64,000 nucleotides of DNA from Cyanophora paradoxa CCMP329 (taxonomy: Eukaryota > Plantae > Glaucophyta): the NCBI GenBank assembly GCA_004431415.1, contig QPMI01000412.1:71197-135196 (forward strand). Reading direction: 5' to 3'. Within the stretch, counting starts at the first letter, position 1, and each line of letters begins with the position of its first letter. The notes under the pieces are model-generated. The model was given only the letters and a program-made list of their open reading frames with translations, was not told the origin of the DNA and searched no databases. A program made the translations under genes and the position numbers. This document shows positions 4,524 to 15,602 of this stretch, one piece after another.

Positions 4524-6543
4524 ATGCTGCCACTCTTGCTGAGCCTGTGCTCCGTCCCCGCGGCCGCGTGCTGCGTGGGATGGACGTGCTCGATGTGCGG
4601 CTTTGCTTTCAAGATGACGCAGTCCATATGTAGTCGCCTCGGGTCTGCGACCTCGGTCTCTTGCGCGTCCGCACCCGAGCCCTGAGCGCCGCCGCAGGTA
4701 CCTCGGCATCTTCGTGTTCAGCATGCTGCTCTCGTGGGTGATGCGCGACTACGGCGCGAGCGCCCTCGCCTGGATCCCGCAGCTCAGTGCGCCCGCCCGC
4801 GCCCTCGCGCTTCCCTCGCCGGCGCTGACGGCCATGCAGGCGACGCCTGTAAGACCGTCGTCTGCTTCGGGAAGATGGTCCGCGCGCCGGCCCCCGCGCC
4901 CCCCTCGCCGCGCCGCGCCGCGCCGAGCCGGCGGCAGGCCGTCTTCCGCATCGGGTTCACGAGCCTTCTCTTCCACGGGACGCACTTCCTGCTGCTGCTG
5001 GGGGTGGACAGCAAGCGGGACTGGCGCGCGCACGTGCAGAACCACTGGTGGGGATCCAAGGCCTTCGTCTGGGTCTCCATCCTGGTCTGCACCTTCCTCA
5101 TGCCCAACTCCGTCTTCGTCGTCTACGGTGCGCGCCCGCCGCCGCCGCCGCTGCGCGCTCTCGCTCGGGCCGACGCCGTCGCGCGCGTGCACAGCGGAGA
5201 TGGCGCGCTGGGGCGCGGGGCTCTTCATCCTGCTGCAGCTGGTCCTGCTGCTGGACTTCGCGTACAGCTGGAACCGGGCGTGGGCCGAGAAGGAGAGCCC
5301 CGCCTGGTACGCCGCCATCCTCGTCGCCTGCCTCGCCCTCCTCGGCGGCGCCCTCGCCCTCATCGTCCTCATGTATGTGCGTCCGCCCGGTCCCCCCCCC
5401 CCCCCCCCCCCCCCCCCGCCCTGGTCCCTCGCTCCCGCGGGGGCGCCCCGGCCCTGGCCGACGCCCGTCCCCCGCCTTCCCTTCCCGCAGGTGTCGTTCA
5501 CGGGGCGGGAGTACTGCGGGCTCTTCTCGGGGTACATCACGGTGTGCCTGGTGCTGGGCGTCGGGTACACGTTCGCCTCGTGCCTGAAGGTCGTCGAGCA
5601 CGGCGCGCTCCTCCCGTCGGCCGTCATCTTCGCCTACTGCGCGTACCTCTGCTGGGCCGCCGTCCTCAGCGTCCCCGCCGACGACTACCGCTCGGCTTGC
5701 ATCACCTTCTCCGTCCGCGGCGCGCCCCAGACCTACGAGATCGTCCTCGTGCGCCCCGCCCCGCCACGCCACGCCCCGCCCCGCCCGCCGGCGCGGCATC
5801 TCCGCTGAGGGCGGGACAGGGCGCGCTCTTCACGTTCGTGTCGGTGGCGCGGAGCACCTTCGCCGCCTCGTCGCGCTCACAGGACATCGTGCGCCCGCTC
5901 GCCCGCCCGCGCCGCCTCCGCCTCCGCCCCGCCCGCCCTGACGTCCTCCCGCCCGCCCAGATCGGGACGGGCGGGGGCCGGCGGGCGGCGGCTGTGCCGG
6001 ATATGGCGGGCCCTGCGCCGGCGACGATGGTGGGGGACGACCACTCGGAGGAGGAGGACGAGGAGGCCGGGGAGGGCGCGGGCACCGGCTACAGGCGAGC
6101 GCCCCCTCGCCCCCGCCCCCCGCCCCCGGCCCCCTCGCCCCGCCCAACGCGCCCCGGCAGCTACGCCTTCTTTCACTTCACGTTCCTCCTGGCCTCGGCC
6201 TACGTGGCCATGCTCATGTCCAACTGGTCCTTCGAGGGCGACTCGGCCTACACCATCGACCGCGGCTGGGTCTCCGTCTGGGTCAAGGCGCGCAATCCTA
6301 GGCCTCACGCCCGCCCCGCCCTGCCGCTGCTGAGGGCGGCGGGGGCGGCGGCCGCAGGTGGGCTCCATGGTCGCCGCCTCGCTCCTCTACATATGGTCCC
6401 TCTTCGCCCCGCTCCTCTTCCCCGACCGCGACTTCGGTCACGGACCGTCCGCCCTCCGCCCCCGCCGCCCCCGCCGCCCCGGCCGCGCGCGCCTCTGATC
6501 GCGACGCCCCGCCCGCAGCTCATCCGTCACCTACTCCATCTAG
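4524..6543 (+). CDS. SERINC: Serine incorporator (SERINC/TMS1) family membrane protein, about 11 exons
   Basis: Family motifs after splicing: CFGKMAVFRIGF, RAHVQNHWWGSK, GAGLFILLQLVLLLDFAYSWN, GALLPSAVIFAYCAYLCWAA, GYSYAFFHFTFLLASAYVAMLMSNW, WVSVWVK, LYIWSLFAPLLFPDRDF. Confidence 0.93.
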
Positions 6544-8066
6544 GTCGAGGCAGCGCCGTGCCTCCGGCTTCCCGCGCCGCCCTCGCCCTCTTGCCCTCCG
6601 CACTCCCCGCTGCGATCGCGATCGGCTCTCATTTCACGAAGGAAACATCGGCTTTAATTTGATAGCTGTTTCAACTTTCAAGGTAGCTCGGCTTCTTTGT
6701 CCACCTCAGGATTTTGTGTGCTTGCCTAGATTTTCTCTCTATGAAAGTTCCGTTTGCACAGGAGAGACAGTCTCTTCTGCATCTCGGTCTAGAAAACGCT
6801 ACACCTGAAACATGTACAGCTTCCAATTCTCCTCTTCGGGCCGCTGAGGCTCGTATACGTAAAGAATCAGTAGCAGCTGAAATGAAGCTTCGAATTCGAG
6901 AACCCGCTGTCCGCCTGAGGACCGCCTCCCGCGGGCCGCGGCCCGCGGGCCGAACTCGGAAATGCCATGATGAGCTGGAGCCTCGGAGGTTTTCAAAACC
7001 AGTTATCGATCAACTGCTCGATGGGGCCCGCAGCTGCGGGCCTGCATGCTGCAGTGGCCCTGCACGTTGCCCAAGCTCAGCCCAACTTGCCCTCCAGAAG
7101 GGGCGGTATGCCCTCTGGAAGCGCCGTTTTCGGACTTTTTTTACGTCTTCGGTTTCACATGAGGCTTCTTCGAACTCGAGATCTAGATAAGGTTCCAACT
7201 TCAACTCTAACTGTACATGTATATACGTACATGGCAGCTACAGAAGTGCGAGTTCGCACAGGCCAGGTGACAACCACTGACAAGGATATCGATCGGACAG
7301 GACAGGCCGCATGCGCAGACCGGGCCGGGGCCGCGCGCTTCGAGCCGGACGGCCGCGCGGCGGGCTCTTTACCCGGCAGAGCCCAAAGCAGAATATATTA
7401 ATTAGCTATAGAGTGCGTATACGTACGCGTGCACGTGGGCGCGCAGCTGCGCTTGTACAGTGCGCATGCCGGCGCCGCGCGCAGCGCGCGCGCGCGCGGC
7501 GCCGGCGCGCGGTCGACGTCTGGATCTGCGAGCATGTGCGCATGCGCGTGTACGTGTGCATTCGCACCTGCCGCCTACGTTTTCGATAATTTCTGTGCTG
7601 CATGGCCGTGCGCGCGGCCGCGCGCATTCGATCAAATTCGCTGCGCTGGCCAAACACAAATTTCGATACCCCGGCAGGGACACCCGCTTGTCGATTGTGG
7701 GCAGGCCTGTGTCCGATCTCCGTAAGATCGCTCCGCGTGCATATGCGTACGCATATGCAGCTTGCAGCGATGCGCGTGCACGTGCACCGCCGTCCGGCCG
7801 CCGCATCGCGCGCGGCGAGCCCGCGCCTGCGAGATCGCCAAGTCGGATCTGCAGCCACTGGGCCGCAGGCCCGAGGCCCACTGGGCCAGTGCGCGCCCGG
7901 CCCAGTTCTGCGGAGCGAGCCGGCGAGCGCGGAACGGCGGCGGTGCGCGCCTGCGCACTGGATCGGAAGCTCCGGCGCGCGGGAGCAGGCGCGCGGCAGG
8001 GACAGAGCACGGACTCTCCGGGAGCAGGCCGGCAGGGGCGGGAACAGCAGGCGATCCACGTGCCTT

Positions 8067-8296: not shown

Positions 8297-11200
8297 ATGG
8301 CGGGCGCCGGCGCGCTGGCGGCCGCGGCGGTCGCGGCGCTGGCGGCGTTGGGCGCGTCACGGGCGGCCTGCACGCTGCTCCACGAGTGGGGCCACCTCGC
8401 CGCCGCCCTTCTGCTCGCCTCCCTCCGCGGCTCCTACGCCCTCGCGGGTTTGCGTCCCGTCCTCGAGTTCCCAGCCAGAAGCTCCCGCTTTAATTTCGAT
8501 GGATTTCCCTCCCCTCGCTCCCCATTCCTGATTCGATCCGCCGTCCTCCCTCAGGCGTGCGTGAGGGCGTGCTGACGTCCGGCAACCTGCGGGGAAACCG
8601 CGGCCTCCGCTGGTGGCTCCACCTCGCCTCCCTCGGCGCCTTCGGATCCGTGGGCCTCCCCGCGAAGAAGGGGGAAGAGAAGGGCCCGGAGGCGGCGTGC
8701 GCGCAAGTGGAGGTGCGGCTGCGGGGCGGGCCCCTGGCCCCGGCCGAGCGCGCTGCGGTCGAGCTCGCCGGTCTCGCCGCGAGCCTCGCCGCCCTCGCCG
8801 CCGCCGCCGCCCTCCCCGCGCTCCCCGACTCCCCGCTCCTCGCCGGTGCGCATGCGCGCCCCGCCTCCCTCCTCCGCTCGCGTCTCCGCCCGCGCGCGCG
8901 ATCGCGGGCGGGGCGGGGTGGTGCAGCGGTGCGGCTAGGGGCGGTGCTGGGCGCCGGGGAGGTGCTGGCCGGCGCCGTGGCGAGCGACCTCTTCCATGCG
9001 CTGCGGCCGGCCCCGGGCCGCTTCCTCTGCGGAAACTTCGGTGCCCTCGTCCGCCGCTCCCTCGTTCGCTCCCCGCCCCGCCCCCGCCGGCCTCCCCGCC
9101 GCCGCCCGCTGACGTCGGCTTTACTTGTTTCGCAGGACGAGTGGGGATACGTGTAAGAGCCCGGCCCCCGCGCGGCCCGCCGGGGCGCCCGCCCCTCACG
9201 GCAGCCGCGCGCGCAGGCCGAGCTGGCTGTGGGGCATGCTCCAGTACATGATCCAGGCGGGTCCCGTCCCCTCCCGCCCCCGACGCCCCGCCCCGCCCCG
9301 CCCCGCGGCGCCGTGGGAGGCGGGAGAGACCGGGCGTGATGGGGCGGGGCGCGGGCAGGTGACGATGGTGCGGGGCGGGCAGGCCGGCGGCCTCGTCACG
9401 TTCGTCTCCAGCGGTCCCCACGACCTCCGCGGCATCCGGTACCCCCGACCCCTCTCCCTCCCCCCGCCCCGCTCCCCTCCCTTGACGCTGCGCTGCCAGG
9501 GAGCGGGTGGTGAACGGGAAGCGGACGGACCTGGGTGTGGTGCTCGTGCGCGCGATGCGGCGGCTCCTAGCCGTGCACGCCGTGCGGGCGTGCCTGCGGC
9601 GGCGCAACCCGTCCCCCGCCGTCCTCTGCATGGGCCACACGCGCTTCGCCACGTCGAGCTTCCCCGCCGTGGGCGAGACGCACCCGCACCAGTGGCTGCC
9701 CCGCCGCGACGTCGCCCACTGGGCCTTCCACCCCGCCGAGGGCGCCTTCCGCCGCACCGAGCGCTCCGCCGAGGCCCGCCCCGCCCCTCGAACGCCCGGC
9801 AGCCGCCTCTTCGAATTCTGACCCTTCCCTCGCGCGCGCGCAGATCTACATCGTGCGCGCCGGCCGCGGAAATCCAGCGTCGCCCCGCGCTCGCGCCCGC
9901 TGATCGCGAGGCCCCGGCCCCTCCCCCGCGCAGACGCACAACGGGGACTTCGACTTCTACGACGCCTTCGGCAAGGACCAGACCTACGAGAACGTGCGCG
10001 CTTCCCGTGCCCCGGTCCCGGCTCGGCCTAGGCTCGCGCGCCGGGCTTACTTACGTGCGCCGGCGGCAGATCGGGCTGTGGCTGGAGAAGGTGCACGGGC
10101 ACGCGAACCTCGCGAAGGGGGACAGCCCGAAGATCGCCGGCATGGTGGACCTCCTCGCCACCCAGGGCCTCTGGCCCGCCTCCGTCAAGCTCGTCCGCCC
10201 CGACCCGCCCCGCCCCGCCCTGTCCAGCCCCCTCCAGTTCCTCCTGCTCAGGCGCGCCCCCGCCCCCAGGCGTACTACACGGAGATCTCGTACGGGCTGG
10301 ACGCCGTGTTCGAGGGGGGCAAGGTGGCCCGCGACTCGCCCTCGGCCGCCCCGCCCGACTCCGACTTCAAGGCACGCCCACGCCCCGCCCCGCCCCGCTC
10401 CGGATCCCTCTCCTGAGACCTTTGCAGGCGGTGGCGGACGTCTTTGAGGCACTCTTCGAGAAGCACGCGCGGGCCCTCGCCAAGGGTCCGCGCCCCCTCC
10501 CCTCCGCCCCGTCCCGCCCGGCTGATCGGACGAACGTTCGTCGGGCAGACGCGTACGTGGCGGGACGGCTGGGCCGCTCGCTGCGGGGGCTGGAGGCGGG
10601 CGGGCGGGCGGGCCCCGCCCTCGTCGCCTTCTTGCAGGCGGCGCTGCGCGAGCTGGAGGCGCGCGCCCTCGAGCTGCGCCTCCTGAGCGGCGCCGACGGT
10701 GAGGCGCGGCGGCGCTTCGCGGCGGCGGCCGTGGAGGCCTTCGTCTGCAACGACATCTACACCGCCACGCGCGCCTTCCTCCACCACGCCCGCGGCTCCT
10801 TCGGGTGCGCACGCCGCGCGCAGCGCGCAGCGGCGCGTGTGTATCCTCTTCGATTCGATCCGAGCCGCCCGCGCGCGCGCAGGCTCGTGGTGGGGTCGGC
10901 GCTGGAGGAGGGGGCGGTGGTGGTGAGCGCGCGGGGCCAGCCGATGTCCGTCGCGTACAGCCCGGAGGCCTCGGTCGTGCTCTTCGGGTCGGAGCACGCG
11001 GCGCTGAAGGTGCCGTTCGGGGCGGGCAAGCCCGGGGCGCCGGAGTTCCGGTACGACCTGGACGAGGTGCGGGGCGAGGTCATCGAGGTCCGCCTCGCCG
11101 ACATGCCGCGCCTCCGCCTCCTCCGCCGCCTCTCCACCGCCCTCGCCCTCGACGGCCCAACCGCCCCCGCCGCTGAGGGCAGCCGCCGGGGGCGCCCGGG

Positions 11201-14200
11201 GCGCACCCTCTCCGCCACGGACCTAGAGGAGGGCCTCGCCGCCGCGCCGGTCGCCGCCCTCGCCGCCCTCCGCAAGACCGGCTCCCTCGCCGGCCTCTCC
11301 GCGGCGGCGGCGGGCAAGCTGAAGGCGGCCGGGGGCGGGGGTGCCTCGGGCTCGTCGCTAGAGCCTGAGAGCGGGACGGAGCGCTGGGTGGAGCTCGAGG
11401 ACGGCGACGCGACCTCCCTCGCCCACTCCGCCTACACCGCGTGCGCCCCCCTTTCTCAGCTTCCGCCCGCCCCTTTCTAAGCTTCCCTCCCAGGGCCTCC
11501 AAGCTCTCGCGGGCGGCGAGCGTTCACGTGGTGCCCAAGGGCGCGGGGGCGGCCGGGGGCGGCGGCGGCGGCGGAGGCGAGTGGGAGTTCTGCCGGGCGC
11601 GGGTGACGGGGGGCGGCTTCCCCGTGGTGCAGCCGAGCGGGGCGGCGATGCACCTGGGCGGGGACCTCTACATGCGGCACTACGCCCTCGCCACCGCCCG
11701 CGAGCTCCGCGGCCTCCCCGAGCTCCAGGTCCGTCTCGAAGCTAAGGACTCTGGCTTGCGGGCTCTGACCCGCGGCCGCGCCGCAGGCGACGCCGCGCTT
11801 CATCGACCTGCGCGGCAACGCGTACATCTCGCCGCTGCCGCCGCCGCCGCGGCCCGGGGCGGACATCGTGGGGGAGGACATCGCGGACATCGCCCGCGTG
11901 CTGAAGGCGATCCGCCTCGACTGGGCGGACGCCGGGGGGCACAACCGCCTCTCGGCCGCCAAGTTCGCCGAGCTGCTCCTCCGCCGCGCCCGCGAGCGGC
12001 GGGCCGGCGACGCCGCCAACAAGGTCGACCTCGTGGTCACTGTGCGCCGGCCGGGCCGGGCCGGGCCCCCCGGGCCCCTCGCCCCTGCGCCGCCGCCGCC
12101 CGCTGCGCGCCTCTCACGTCGGTGCGCGCAGGGGTGCGAGATCTCGCTGTGGATCGCGGAGAACTGGGTCTCCGACCTCAAGAAGTGCATGCCGAGCCTC
12201 ACCGTCCTCGCCATCAGCGCCAACAAGGCCCGCCCCGCCCCGCCCCGCCCCGCCCCGCCCCACCCCGAGCCCCTCCATTTGGCTAAGGCGGCGGCTCCTG
12301 GCCCGGGCAGATCATCGACGTGTACGGGAGCAAGCGCGGGGAGAAGGCGGTGGCGGGGTCCGCCTTCTCGCGGCGGACGGCGGACCTCTCGGGGGCGGTG
12401 GGCCTCGCCGTGAGCCACAGCGGCAACACCTTCGCGACGACGCAGGCAACGCTGCTGCTGAAGGGCCTCACCGCCGGCCGCACCTTCTGCCTCGTCCGCA
12501 ACACGGACACCCTCATGTCCAGCATCGTGGGGCAGCGCCTGGACCGGAGCGCGCCGCGGTGCCCGTTCGTCTTCACGAACGGGGCCGGCTGGCGCCCCGC
12601 GGAGCCGAGCAGCGTGGCGGCCGCCGCCCTCCACCAGACCCTCACCGAGCTCCTCCTCTGCCTCGTCCGCCCCGCCCCGCCCCGCCCGCGCCGGCCCCTC
12701 TTCAGAGCTTGCCCGCTGATCCCCCGCCCTTCCCGCGCAGGTCTTCACGTTCGACAGCCTCTCCATCCACGAGCGGCCCTTCGGCATCGTGTGCGCGCAC
12801 GCCTGCCGCCGCGGCCCGCCGCCCCGTGAATCCTGATCATAGCCCGCTGCTGCAGGACGAGCCCGACGGACGCGCACGCGCTGGACTCGCTGGCGCACAC
12901 GACCGTCGAGAAGCACGTGCCCCTCATCACGGGCCGCACCGCCGCCGGCGCCCCCGCCACCGAGCCGGACCCCGAGCACCCGGCCCGCACGCGGCCCTCG
13001 GCGTACCACGCGAAGCTGGTGGAGGCGGGGCGCCGCTGGGGCATGCACGTCATCGAGGCGCCCCTCGTCTGGGCCCTCGCCTCCCTCTACGTCTGGCTCT
13101 CCGTCTTCTTCGGCGTCTCCCTCTTCCGCGTCCTCCTCTCCGGCTACGACCACTGCTCCGGCGGCATCTGCGCCCCGGGCTACGGTCCGCCCCGCCCCGC
13201 CTCCCGCACATCTCTCTGCTTTCCCACTCCCCACTCCTCCGCAGGGCTCGACGGGCGCTACCAGTGGCTGCACCGCTTCCTGGACAGCTGGCTCTACGTC
13301 TGGTGCGTCCTGGCCTTCACACTCCTGCTCCGCCTCGTGCAGCGCCGCCCGCTCCTCGCCCGCCTCGGCCGCCGCACCGTCGTCGTCGGTGCGCGGCCAG
13401 CCGAGCCCAGCCCAGCCCAGCCTAGCCTGGCCTGAGCGGGGCCGGGCGGCAGGGGACGCGCCCTACGTGCACCAGTGCCTGGAGGCCTTCCTCTCCAAGC
13501 TCTTCGCCCTCTCCTACAGGTCCGCAAGCCCTCGGGCTCGGCCTCTCCTACAGGGATCGGCCCGACTGGCGGGGGGCGGGGCGGGGCGGGGCAGCATCGC
13601 GTCGGTGGACGTGCACGGGGGCAGCCCGGCGGACCACCTCGTGCACCGCTTCACCCACCGCGTGGCCCGCGGCGTCCTCCTCGCCGTCGGGCGCCCCGAC
13701 GGCCGCGTGTGCGCCCTCACCAAGGCCGAGTCCTCCACCATGCTCTCCATCTGCCAGGCGAAGGTCCGATCCGCCCGCCCCCGCCCCCTCCCCCGCCCCC
13801 TTCTCCGAGGCCAGCTATCTGTCCCTGCCCCCACCCCCACCCCCGCCCCCGCTCCCGCCGCCTCCCTTCGTCTTGAGCGGGCGCGCTGACCGGTCCTTCT
13901 CCCCGCAGAGCATCCAGAACCTGGGCCGCTCCGGTGGCCCCGAGCTCGTCACTGTGCGTCCTCCTTTTTAAATCGGGCTCTAAATCTGAGGCCGGCGCTG
14001 ACGGTGCGGGGCCGGGGGCAGATCGGGCACAACCCGTGGACGCACGAGCAGATGATCGACACGCGGATCGTGCTGCCGAGCGAGCGGGGCCAGTTCCTCT
14101 GCGAGGCCGTCTCGGGCCTCAAGAGCTACTACCGGCCCCGCCAGCGCGCCCCCTCCATCGTCGCCAGCCTCGGGAGCCTCGCGAAGCGGGCCGGCCTCTC

Positions 14201-15602
14201 CAACCGCGGCGTGCGGCCGGGGCGGGGCCAGGACGAGTCGGTGCACCTCGGGTTCAGCCCCGGGGAGATCATGTCGGCGGGGGCGGCGGCGGTGGCGGCC
14301 AAGGCGGAGATGTCGCGCCTCGAGCTGCTCGTCATGAAGCACCAGTCGAACATCATCGGCGCCGAGTCCATCATCTACTCCAAGGCCCTCGCCCTCTCCA
14401 AGCGCCGCGGCTCCGGATCCGGCGCCCGCCGCGGCTCCGGCGGGCCCGCCCCGCCCCCGGCGCCGGCCCCCACGCGGGCGCAGGCGCCGGCGCCGGCGAG
14501 CCCCGCGCTCAAGGCGACGCCGGTGCACATGAAGACGATCTCCGTGCACCTCGAGGGACCGGCTTCGCTCTGGGCGATCGCGAGCTCGCCGGCGGGCCCG
14601 CCGCCTGCTGCCCGCCGCCGCCGGCCAAGGTGGACCCGCTGCGGGTGACGCTGAGCAGCCCGCGCGGGCCGGGGCCCGGGGCGGCGAGGGCGGCTCCACC
14701 CCGCGGGCCCGCGCCGGCCTGGCGGAGGAGGCGGGCCCGTTCCCCGCCGCGGCCCGCGCCCGCCGAGCCGCCTCGGCGCCTCGGGCTCGGCTCGGGCGGG
14801 CCTGCGGCGCTTCCGGGCGGCGGCGGAGCGGGTGCTGGCGGAGCAGGTGCGGCCTCGGCTGGCGGCGGGGCGGCGGGCGGCGGCGGCGGAGGGCCCCTCC
14901 CTGGGCCGCTTTCAGGCCCTCGTCATGAAGCTCGTCCACGAGCGCCGCGGTGCGCGCGCTCTCGATCGCTTAGACTCCAAAACTTCAATTTATACTCCAA
15001 AAACTTCAGTTTAGACTCCGAAAGCGGGCCCCAAAGTCTGACTGGGCGCGGCGGGCTGGGCAGCGGTGATATCGCCGCACAGCCGGGCGACGCAGCACAC
15101 GTTCAGCGACCTCTCGCTCCCCGTGCAGGCCGCCCTCGAGGCCCAGCAGCCCCTCGAGGAGCTCGCCGAGTCCCGCCTCTTCTCCATGGAGCGGTCCGCA
15201 CCCCCCTCGTTCCTAAGCTTGAGCTCGTGATCATGATCGAACCCTAGCTATCCTTCAGCTTACTAAGTTAGTTAAAAACAATGCTCAGCTCAGCTCAATT
15301 TATCCGATCTCGTTCTGAGGGCGCGGGGTCCGGGGCGCAGGATGGTGGCGTTCATGGTGATGTTCCACGCGATGGCGGCCCGCGTCGCCGCCTTCCCCCT
15401 CCTCGGCTTCGACCTGGCCCGCTCCCAGTCCTCCCTCCGCGTCGCCTCCACCGCCGCCCCCGCCTCGGGCGCCGAGATCGCCCAGGCCCTCGCCGCCATG
15501 GCCGACCGCGCCCAGCGCGCCGCCGCCGAGGCCGAGCGCCGCGGCGCCCCCGCCGCCGGCATCTCTATGGAGCAGGCCCGCCGCCGCCTCTCCTTCGGCT
15601 GA
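8297..15602 (+). CDS. Large GlmS/GFAT-like protein: N-terminal HExxH (M50-like) membrane domain + class II (Ntn) glutamine amidotransferase + two divergent SIS domains with an inserted transmembrane hairpin; more than 20 exons
   Basis: HEWGH (8381-8395); CGNFG (9028-9042); VRGGQAGG; GHTRFAT (9633-9653); THPH; THNGDF; KGDS; ARGSFG; SARGQPM; FGSE; VTGCEIS; VSHSGNT; KLFALSY; stop TGA at 15600-15602. Confidence 0.85.

Follow-up and report, generated by a model that had tools for sequence, protein, structure and literature searches.

A candidate self-removing intramembrane-protease domain before the Ntn cysteine of a GlmS-related protein from Cyanophora paradoxa and its relatives

The glutamine site of class II (Ntn) amidotransferases needs the free alpha-amine of its cysteine to work, and in GlmS this Cys1 is exposed by removal of the initiator methionine. 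The N-terminal extensions of PurF and GltB are short and are removed autocatalytically, and the known site-2 proteases act in trans, on separate membrane substrates. Propeptides of class II amidotransferases in general have been described as being removed autocatalytically (PMC9140057), and the isomerisation carried out by GlmS requires the residues E488, H504 and K603 (PMC9272926). In the site-2 protease SpoIVFB the residues H43, H47, D137 and E44 are used in the active site, and the exchange E44Q abolishes activity (PMC11486902). Furthermore, self-processing by C39 and S8 domains has been proposed for the giant proteins of Omnitrophota (bioRxiv 10.1101/2023.11.21.568195).

The gene considered here lies in a window of 64,000 nucleotides from Cyanophora paradoxa CCMP329 (contig QPMI01000412.1; positions are those of this whole stretch). 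A first-pass annotation of the window had proposed that an Ntn cysteine is caged behind a fused M50-like membrane metallopeptidase domain and needs proteolytic exposure, a proposal which now gains comparative support from folds, conservation, domain swaps and the relocation of a catalytic glutamate.

Gene model, family and origin

The gene is located on the + strand and extends from an ATG at 8297 to approximately 15602, whereas the interval assigned to it in the first-pass annotation ended too early. It is intron-rich, GC-rich and eukaryotic, comprises approximately 27 exons and is predicted to encode an M50-like domain, a class II glutamine amidotransferase domain, two SIS domains separated by a transmembrane hairpin and a low-complexity tail. 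Up to 14080 the model is supported by RNA-type contigs and by junctions, the last exons being those of the database model only. The contigs coincide with the exons and derive from four runs on two samples, which are presumed to be RNA. A 24-exon model up to 13953 keeps 1300 codons open with 20 GT and four GC donors and AG acceptors throughout, and RNA-type junctions confirm the predicted ones at approximately 10371/10428, 11440/11494, 12041/12132, 12790/12856, 13184/13245 and 13953/14022. GC donors thus make up 4 of the 24 donors of this model, and a micro-exon of 9 nt is located at 9844-9852. The upstream neighbour on the + strand (about 4700-6660) is presumably a gene resembling those for Serinc/TMS membrane proteins, judging from its motifs.

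Exon 1 (8297-8447) encodes the first hydrophobic helix with HEWGH at 8381-8395 (H29 at 8381, E30 at 8384, H33 at 8393) and is covered by an RNA-type contig from 8301 to 8446. This contig runs on for 121 letters past the exon. As a depth of 2.61, which is 4.3 x 121/199, was recorded in the bin of exon 2, we infer the join of exons 1 and 2. Exon 2 (8555-8845), placed by alignment and the spliced model, encodes the re-entrant-loop region (NLRGN, including G64) and the AG helix AVELAGLAASL (G123 at 8770). No junction of exons 2 and 3 is present among the RNA junctions listed for the gene. Exon 3 (8927-9063) encodes both AVASDL and CGNFG, that is, a helix ending in D168 (8986), a linker of 13 residues, the conserved P2 residue Phe180 (9022), the predicted scissile bond L181|C182 and Cys182 (9028-9030); 12 residues separate L169 from C182. 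All elements first described, from HEWGH and the AG helix to AVASDL and CGNFG, are thus present and joined in one frame across canonical GT-AG and GC-AG introns, but the domain before the cysteine measures 181 aa instead of the estimated 150 or so. As no in-frame ATG occurs from 8557 to the Cys codon an internal Met-Cys start is excluded, and an alternative acceptor before the Cys does not exist in the sequence either. A plastid transit peptide was likewise rejected, the protein starting, as judged by eye, with a hydrophobic helix.

The database protein of the gene is P0001 (EukProt tig00020560_g11082.t1, 1711 aa). It differs from the new model in missing two GC-AG introns, of which it retains one (9257-9358), while at the other it truncates exon 7 (9710-9773); an RNA-type contig spans 9515-9773, against the shortened exon of P0001. 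The later homology searches used P0001 with these two introns mis-handled.

A search with exon 7 revealed 214 relatives, to which proteins of algae and cyanobacteria and large bacterial proteins were added by further searches. The family is found in glaucophyte, red, green, haptophyte, diatom and dinoflagellate algae (named members being Porphyridium, Klebsormidium, Closterium, Cymbomonas, Prymnesium, Epithemia, Polarella and Prorocentrum), in many cyanobacteria and among large bacterial proteins; the named bacterial members are Chroococcidiopsis, Pleurocapsa, Nostoc, Chamaesiphon and one Ca. Omnitrophica protein (P0330). None has an annotation that goes beyond hypothetical, GATase type-2 or SIS domain-containing protein. 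Cyanobacterial CGNFG relatives, as mentioned in the first-pass annotation, were recovered in these searches. EF-hands are fused to diatom- and prasinophyte-type homologs (P0160, P0164, P0168, P0169, P0171, P0173, P0174), and beta-propeller-type repeats to the cyanobacterial P0208 and P0222, while P0144 carries a weak glucosamine-6-P isomerase domain.

In an unrooted mixture-model tree a branch with an SH-aLRT value of 99 sets the 22 eukaryotic rows apart; the cyanobacteria are grouped with a value of 100, and the other bacteria form a weak third group (77). The algal genes therefore appear to stand beside the sampled cyanobacteria, their nesting within the cyanobacteria not being supported. 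A single ancient acquisition compatible with endosymbiotic transfer seems possible on this basis. A recent transfer from a cyanobacterium to Cyanophora in particular was rejected, since the algal sequences form one group outside the cyanobacteria.

Cyanobacterial copies are found just downstream of co-oriented multi-receiver or hybrid kinase genes (L018, L020, L021, L024, L026, L029, L033, L042, L044, L045), often with a SulP-STAS-cNMP gene close by. A divergent PepSY-PAS-GGDEF gene is present in 12 loci (L004-L013, L019, L028), and Ser/Thr kinases also occur among the neighbours. A conserved metabolic operon was not found around the cyanobacterial copies.

The site-2-protease-like domain and its glutamate

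Residues 12-177 of an AlphaFold2 model of P0001 1-618 (pLDDT 84.5) match RseP, SpoIVFB and MjS2P with Z-scores of 7.1, 6.3 and 5.5, which are modest and in a range common for helical bundles. The aligned ranges include the third-ligand Asp of each protease (RseP D402, SpoIVFB D137, MjS2P D148). HEWGH sits in helix 3-43 of the model, and both His are kept across the family. According to a profile search of the N-domain against the PDB the best matches were RseP orthologues (E 2.9e-4); aq_1964 was also matched and, more weakly, MJ0392. Pfam M50 or M50B is matched by 20-22 of 82 family members, with M50B reaching E 1.5e-8 and the M50 (PF02163) matches remaining under the cut-off of that model. 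The N-domain of the Cyanophora protein itself has no Pfam match, Pfam runs on single exons gave nothing useful, and an ESM Atlas feature search with the N-domain returned M50 clusters, as leads of sub-0.9 only.

In the alignment of 82 N-domains H29, H33, G123, D168 and C182 are invariant. Since neither G123 nor D168 had been used in selecting the rows and both are nevertheless found in 82/82, the motif set is not due to chance. D168 is also invariant in a wider set (182/182) and is, by homology, the putative third Zn ligand. The His/His/Asp set, on whose conservation among homologs the first-pass reading depended, is kept across the family.

The cyanobacterial HGLGH forms at first looked dead, because the E44Q exchange abolishes the activity of SpoIVFB (PMC11486902). 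However, the HGxxH forms, which lack the Glu of HExxH, carry a Glu approximately 24 residues downstream, in the re-entrant-loop region, in 136/136 distinct sequences, and their interpretation as dead proteases was rejected. Among HExxH forms this distal Glu was detected in 2 of 35; the Cyanophora protein has the canonical E30 and a Gly (G64) at the distal site, and P0337 has both glutamates. Only two changes between HE and HG are seen on the tree, one at the cyanobacterial base and one reversion nested in the Pleurocapsaceae, in which a clade regained HExxH and lost the distal Glu in 8 of 9 cases. This reciprocal pattern, to be counted as two independent events and not as 136, points to selection for one catalytic base, and the distal Glu would presumably be placed near the Zn. 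An example of HGxxH with the distal Glu is L004:8001-8630, to be contrasted with L013 and L028.

The amidotransferase and double-SIS halves

Exons 4-14 (9136-11085) encode, on the basis of conservation and fold, the class II glutamine amidotransferase domain, which contains a helical insert. The model range 182-618 aligns to GlmS 1-217 with Z 23 (GFAT and GlmS together 23-24), and the alignment starts exactly at residue 182, which corresponds to Cys1/2 of GlmS, GFAT, PurF, AsnB and GltS (Z 14-24). The motifs RG, HTRFAT, HPH, HNG and GDS listed in the first-pass annotation are indeed present, but past its end coordinate, at 9371, 9642, 9681, 9940 and 10121. They mark the equivalents of GlmS R26 (9371), R73 (9642), T76 (9651), H86 (9681), N98-G99 (9940) and D123 (10121), all of which are invariant in 107 rows aligned to E. 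coli GlmS; the position of GlmS H77 is Ser in the family and that of W74 is F or Y. The protein thus has two features of a class II (Ntn) amidotransferase, the Ntn fold starting from the nucleophile Cys and the glutamine-site residues.

The first SIS domain is encoded by exons 16-19 (11787-12790; conservation and fold of a homolog) and the transmembrane hairpin between the two SIS domains by exons 20-21 (12856-13388; about residues 1127-1204 of P0001), as indicated by hydropathy and by helices in the model of the cyanobacterial homolog. The second SIS domain and the C-tail follow at 13453-15460, where equivalences were assigned by motif and fold range and not from a printed structural alignment. 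The C-half of the cyanobacterial homolog (model pLDDT 85.3) has the GlmS double-SIS fold with Z 32.4 over E. coli GlmS 236-608, and the C-half of P0001 aligns to this modelled homolog at about 37%. This GlmS-type half with altered catalytic residues, which would be membrane-anchored after any cut, goes beyond what the first-pass annotation had described.

The first SIS domain contains a family-invariant Glu in G-x-E-x-S (12138), the phosphate loop SHSGNT (12413) and an invariant Glu in AEP (12602). In the second, the equivalents of K485 (13497) and H504 (13644) are kept, by motif and fold range, whereas the position of E488, assigned by motif, is Ala in the Cyanophora protein (13506) and Ser, Ala or Cys across the family (K-L-F-[SA]-x-S-Y). 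The K603 position is K or R in the family and probably Arg here, in SQSSLR (15423-15440). Because E488, H504 and K603 are needed for isomerisation (PMC9272926) and E488 is replaced, the protein was not classed as a canonical GlmS. The NCBIfam models TIGR01135 and PRK00331 score it at 19-27 bits, below their cut-offs of 418 and 381. It may be speculated that the two invariant Glu of the first SIS domain could replace the isomerase base. Searches of the PDB with HMM profiles of the amidotransferase or the C-half did not recover GlmS, which was found by fold comparison alone; an hhalign match of the C-half was confined to the phosphate loop, and an Atlas fold search returned ordinary GATases only.

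Exchange of the pre-cysteine domain and the proposed maturation

The state preceding the Cys was classified for approximately 290 of 378 distinct sequences. An HGxxH domain is found in 136 and an HExxH domain in 106, while 37 (and two more with called extensions) start with Met-Cys, so that in these 37 homologs the Cys is the free N-terminal residue by translation. A CAAX-type protease precedes the Cys in two sequences by pattern and in P0328 by alignment, RSE[LV]R directly precedes it in three (two proteins and one cluster-mate), and four sequences are unexplained. By tblastn, nine cyanobacterial genome loci have the Met-Cys start with no protease remnant, which speaks against a split or pseudogenised protease gene upstream of them. 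Six pairs of Met-Cys and fused proteins share 70-88% identity, and at least 11 changes between the two states are seen in a FastTree tree built from the Cys onward. These swaps suggest that the family is under pressure for an N-terminal Cys and that the domain is interchangeable with Met removal; its frequent loss shows that it can be dispensed with.

In the M50 forms the distance from Asp to Cys is never less than 11 and mostly 14, with F, Y or L at P2 in 233 of 242 and a very variable P1. The same slot is occupied in the large bacterial proteins P0098, P0144 and P0328 by a CPBP/Rce1-type protease, which is unrelated to M50. EE, F..YH and H...N are invariant in all three, the Arg of EExxxR being Gln in P0098; Pfam PF02517 matches all of them (best E 1.1e-5), and the last catalytic His is located 16 residues before LL|C. 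An ESM Atlas feature search with the CPBP piece yielded unrelated DUFs, again as leads of sub-0.9 only.

Taken together, the comparative evidence argues strongly for a cut at F-x|C by the fused protease, which would expose the Ntn nucleophile and which we consider rather likely. The precursor would be inserted in the membrane, and its N-domain would bind Zn via H29, H33 and D168 with E30 as general base. The chain, looping back 13 residues after D168, would be cut at F-L|C182, most likely in cis, and the freed alpha-amino group of Cys182 would complete the class II glutaminase site in the manner of Met removal in GlmS. The mature enzyme would be kept on the membrane by the hairpin in the double-SIS domain. 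Glutamine would probably be hydrolysed upon binding of a sugar phosphate in the SIS pocket, to which the ammonia would be passed, in a chemistry other than that of the textbook GlmS isomerase (E488 lost, K603 K or R). Zn binding, cleavage, its cis geometry and the enzymatic activity are all inferred here from comparison.

Alternatively, Cys182 may attack the preceding peptide bond by itself (N-to-S shift), as for the PurF or GltB propeptides, in which case the M50 domain would be a membrane anchor, a Lewis-acid helper through its Zn, or a released protease with other substrates. Such autoproteolysis is established for class II amidotransferases (PMC9140057), and the Glu of HExxH is missing in most cyanobacterial members. 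P0334, which lacks HExxH altogether, also fits this reading; it keeps the Asp and L-Y|C, as P0345 with NExxH keeps the aromatic-x|CGNFG junction also seen in P0334, and both may be degenerate pro-domains, possibly cleaved in trans, or counter-examples. However, autoproteolysis does not account for an unrelated intramembrane protease in the same slot and leaves the reciprocal relocation of the Glu without a reason, and ordinary non-protease propeptides were not seen among the approximately 290 classified sequences apart from the four unexplained ones. We therefore regard it as unlikely.

It also seems quite unlikely that control runs in the reverse direction, with an uncut chain in which glutamine or sugar phosphate is sensed by the amidotransferase and SIS domains, and these gate a protease acting on other membrane substrates, the thiol of Cys182 possibly sitting on the Zn as a cysteine switch. 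The mostly signalling genes next to the cyanobacterial copies, the EF-hands of algal homologs and the lost isomerase base E488 would agree with a sensor. Against it, close relatives without the protease persist, always with Met directly before the Cys, and the whole glutamine site, which requires the free alpha-amine, is invariant. An artefact, with N-terminal exons that are part of a different transcript or with an HExxH that occurs by chance, is hardly credible, despite the absence of a listed RNA junction of exons 2 and 3 and the depth-based join of exons 1 and 2, since a single exon encodes both D168 and CGNFG, no Met lies between them, and the same fusion in intronless bacterial genes and transcriptome-derived algal proteins refutes it for the family.

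As for the cut at F-x|C by the fused protease, the long retention of the domain, the signalling genes in the neighbourhood and the algal EF-hands hint at a regulation of this step; that cleavage is gated by a signal instead of being constitutive maturation is nevertheless somewhat doubtful.

The motif R[SA]E[LMV]R recurs one to three times per protein at apparent domain borders of large bacterial proteins, against a background of 3 in 297,000 residues. Its carriers are P0003 (612-617), P0327 (637-642), P0017, P0066, P0112, P0127, P0329, P0331 and P0339-P0344, and in two it directly precedes the Ntn Cys. Large Omnitrophota-type proteins may be processed at this motif.

In its full extent our proposal is that there are self-removing intramembrane-protease pro-domains of the S2P or CAAX type, including an S2P variant with the base moved out of HExxH. 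By cleavage in cis of the chain to which they belong they would expose an Ntn nucleophile, so that a membrane-bound glutamine/sugar-phosphate enzyme would be gated in response to signals; from the Cys1 rule it would also follow that large Omnitrophota-type polyproteins are processed at RSE[LMV]R. We put this combined reading forward tentatively, at slightly less than an even chance. In the literature covered, with subscription journals largely outside its scope, neither the motif nor the fusion was found to be described, and the same holds for RSELR and for an algal protein with GATase, SIS and EF-hand domains. The component families are known, whereas the way they are combined, the exchange of proteases and the relocation of the glutamate appear to be undescribed.

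The idea of embedded proteases splitting large multi-enzyme chains is shared with the proposal made for Omnitrophota, and the homolog P0330 is labelled Ca. Omnitrophica. That paper mentions no M50, CAAX or amidotransferase domain and states that the cleavage points are unknown (bioRxiv 10.1101/2023.11.21.568195); amidotransferase or CAAX domains are not mentioned in a further paper on Omnitrophota giant proteins either. Since an Ntn Cys must be N-terminal, it could serve as a built-in reporter of cut sites in large bacterial proteins and so offers a testable site for the cutting of Omnitrophota giant proteins.

With GlmS and GFAT the family shares the domain order GATase-SIS-SIS, Cys1, the S-Q/H-S-G-x-T loop and the equivalents of K485 and H504. 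In contrast to them it has a helical insert, a transmembrane hairpin and an N-terminal protease domain in the place of Met, with a structural-alignment identity of merely 11-22%. It seems to be an uncharacterised GlmS offshoot linking glutamine and sugar phosphate at the membrane.

The N-domain has HExxH on a membrane helix, the AG helix, the distal Asp and apparently the core fold in common with site-2 proteases (RseP, SpoIVFB, MJ0392; Pfam Peptidase_M50B). It differs in being a minimal core of 120-200 aa without PDZ or CBS domains, in having [ST]D instead of the NPDG/LDG motif of classic S2Ps, in a cyanobacterial subfamily with HGxxH and a relocated Glu, and in its likely substrate, which is its own chain 13 residues beyond the Asp. 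If true, the maturation by a minimal S2P of the enzyme to which it is fused would be a new role for site-2 proteases. Intramembrane proteolysis could then be studied in a simple system of one chain, for which nature supplies a series of mutants (HExxH, HGxxH with distal Glu, reversion).

B. subtilis and eukaryotic PurF and the glutamate synthase GltB are also made as precursors whose Cys1 is exposed by removing an N-terminal extension. In the family described here, however, the extension consists of an entire intramembrane protease domain, and it is exchangeable for one of another protease family.
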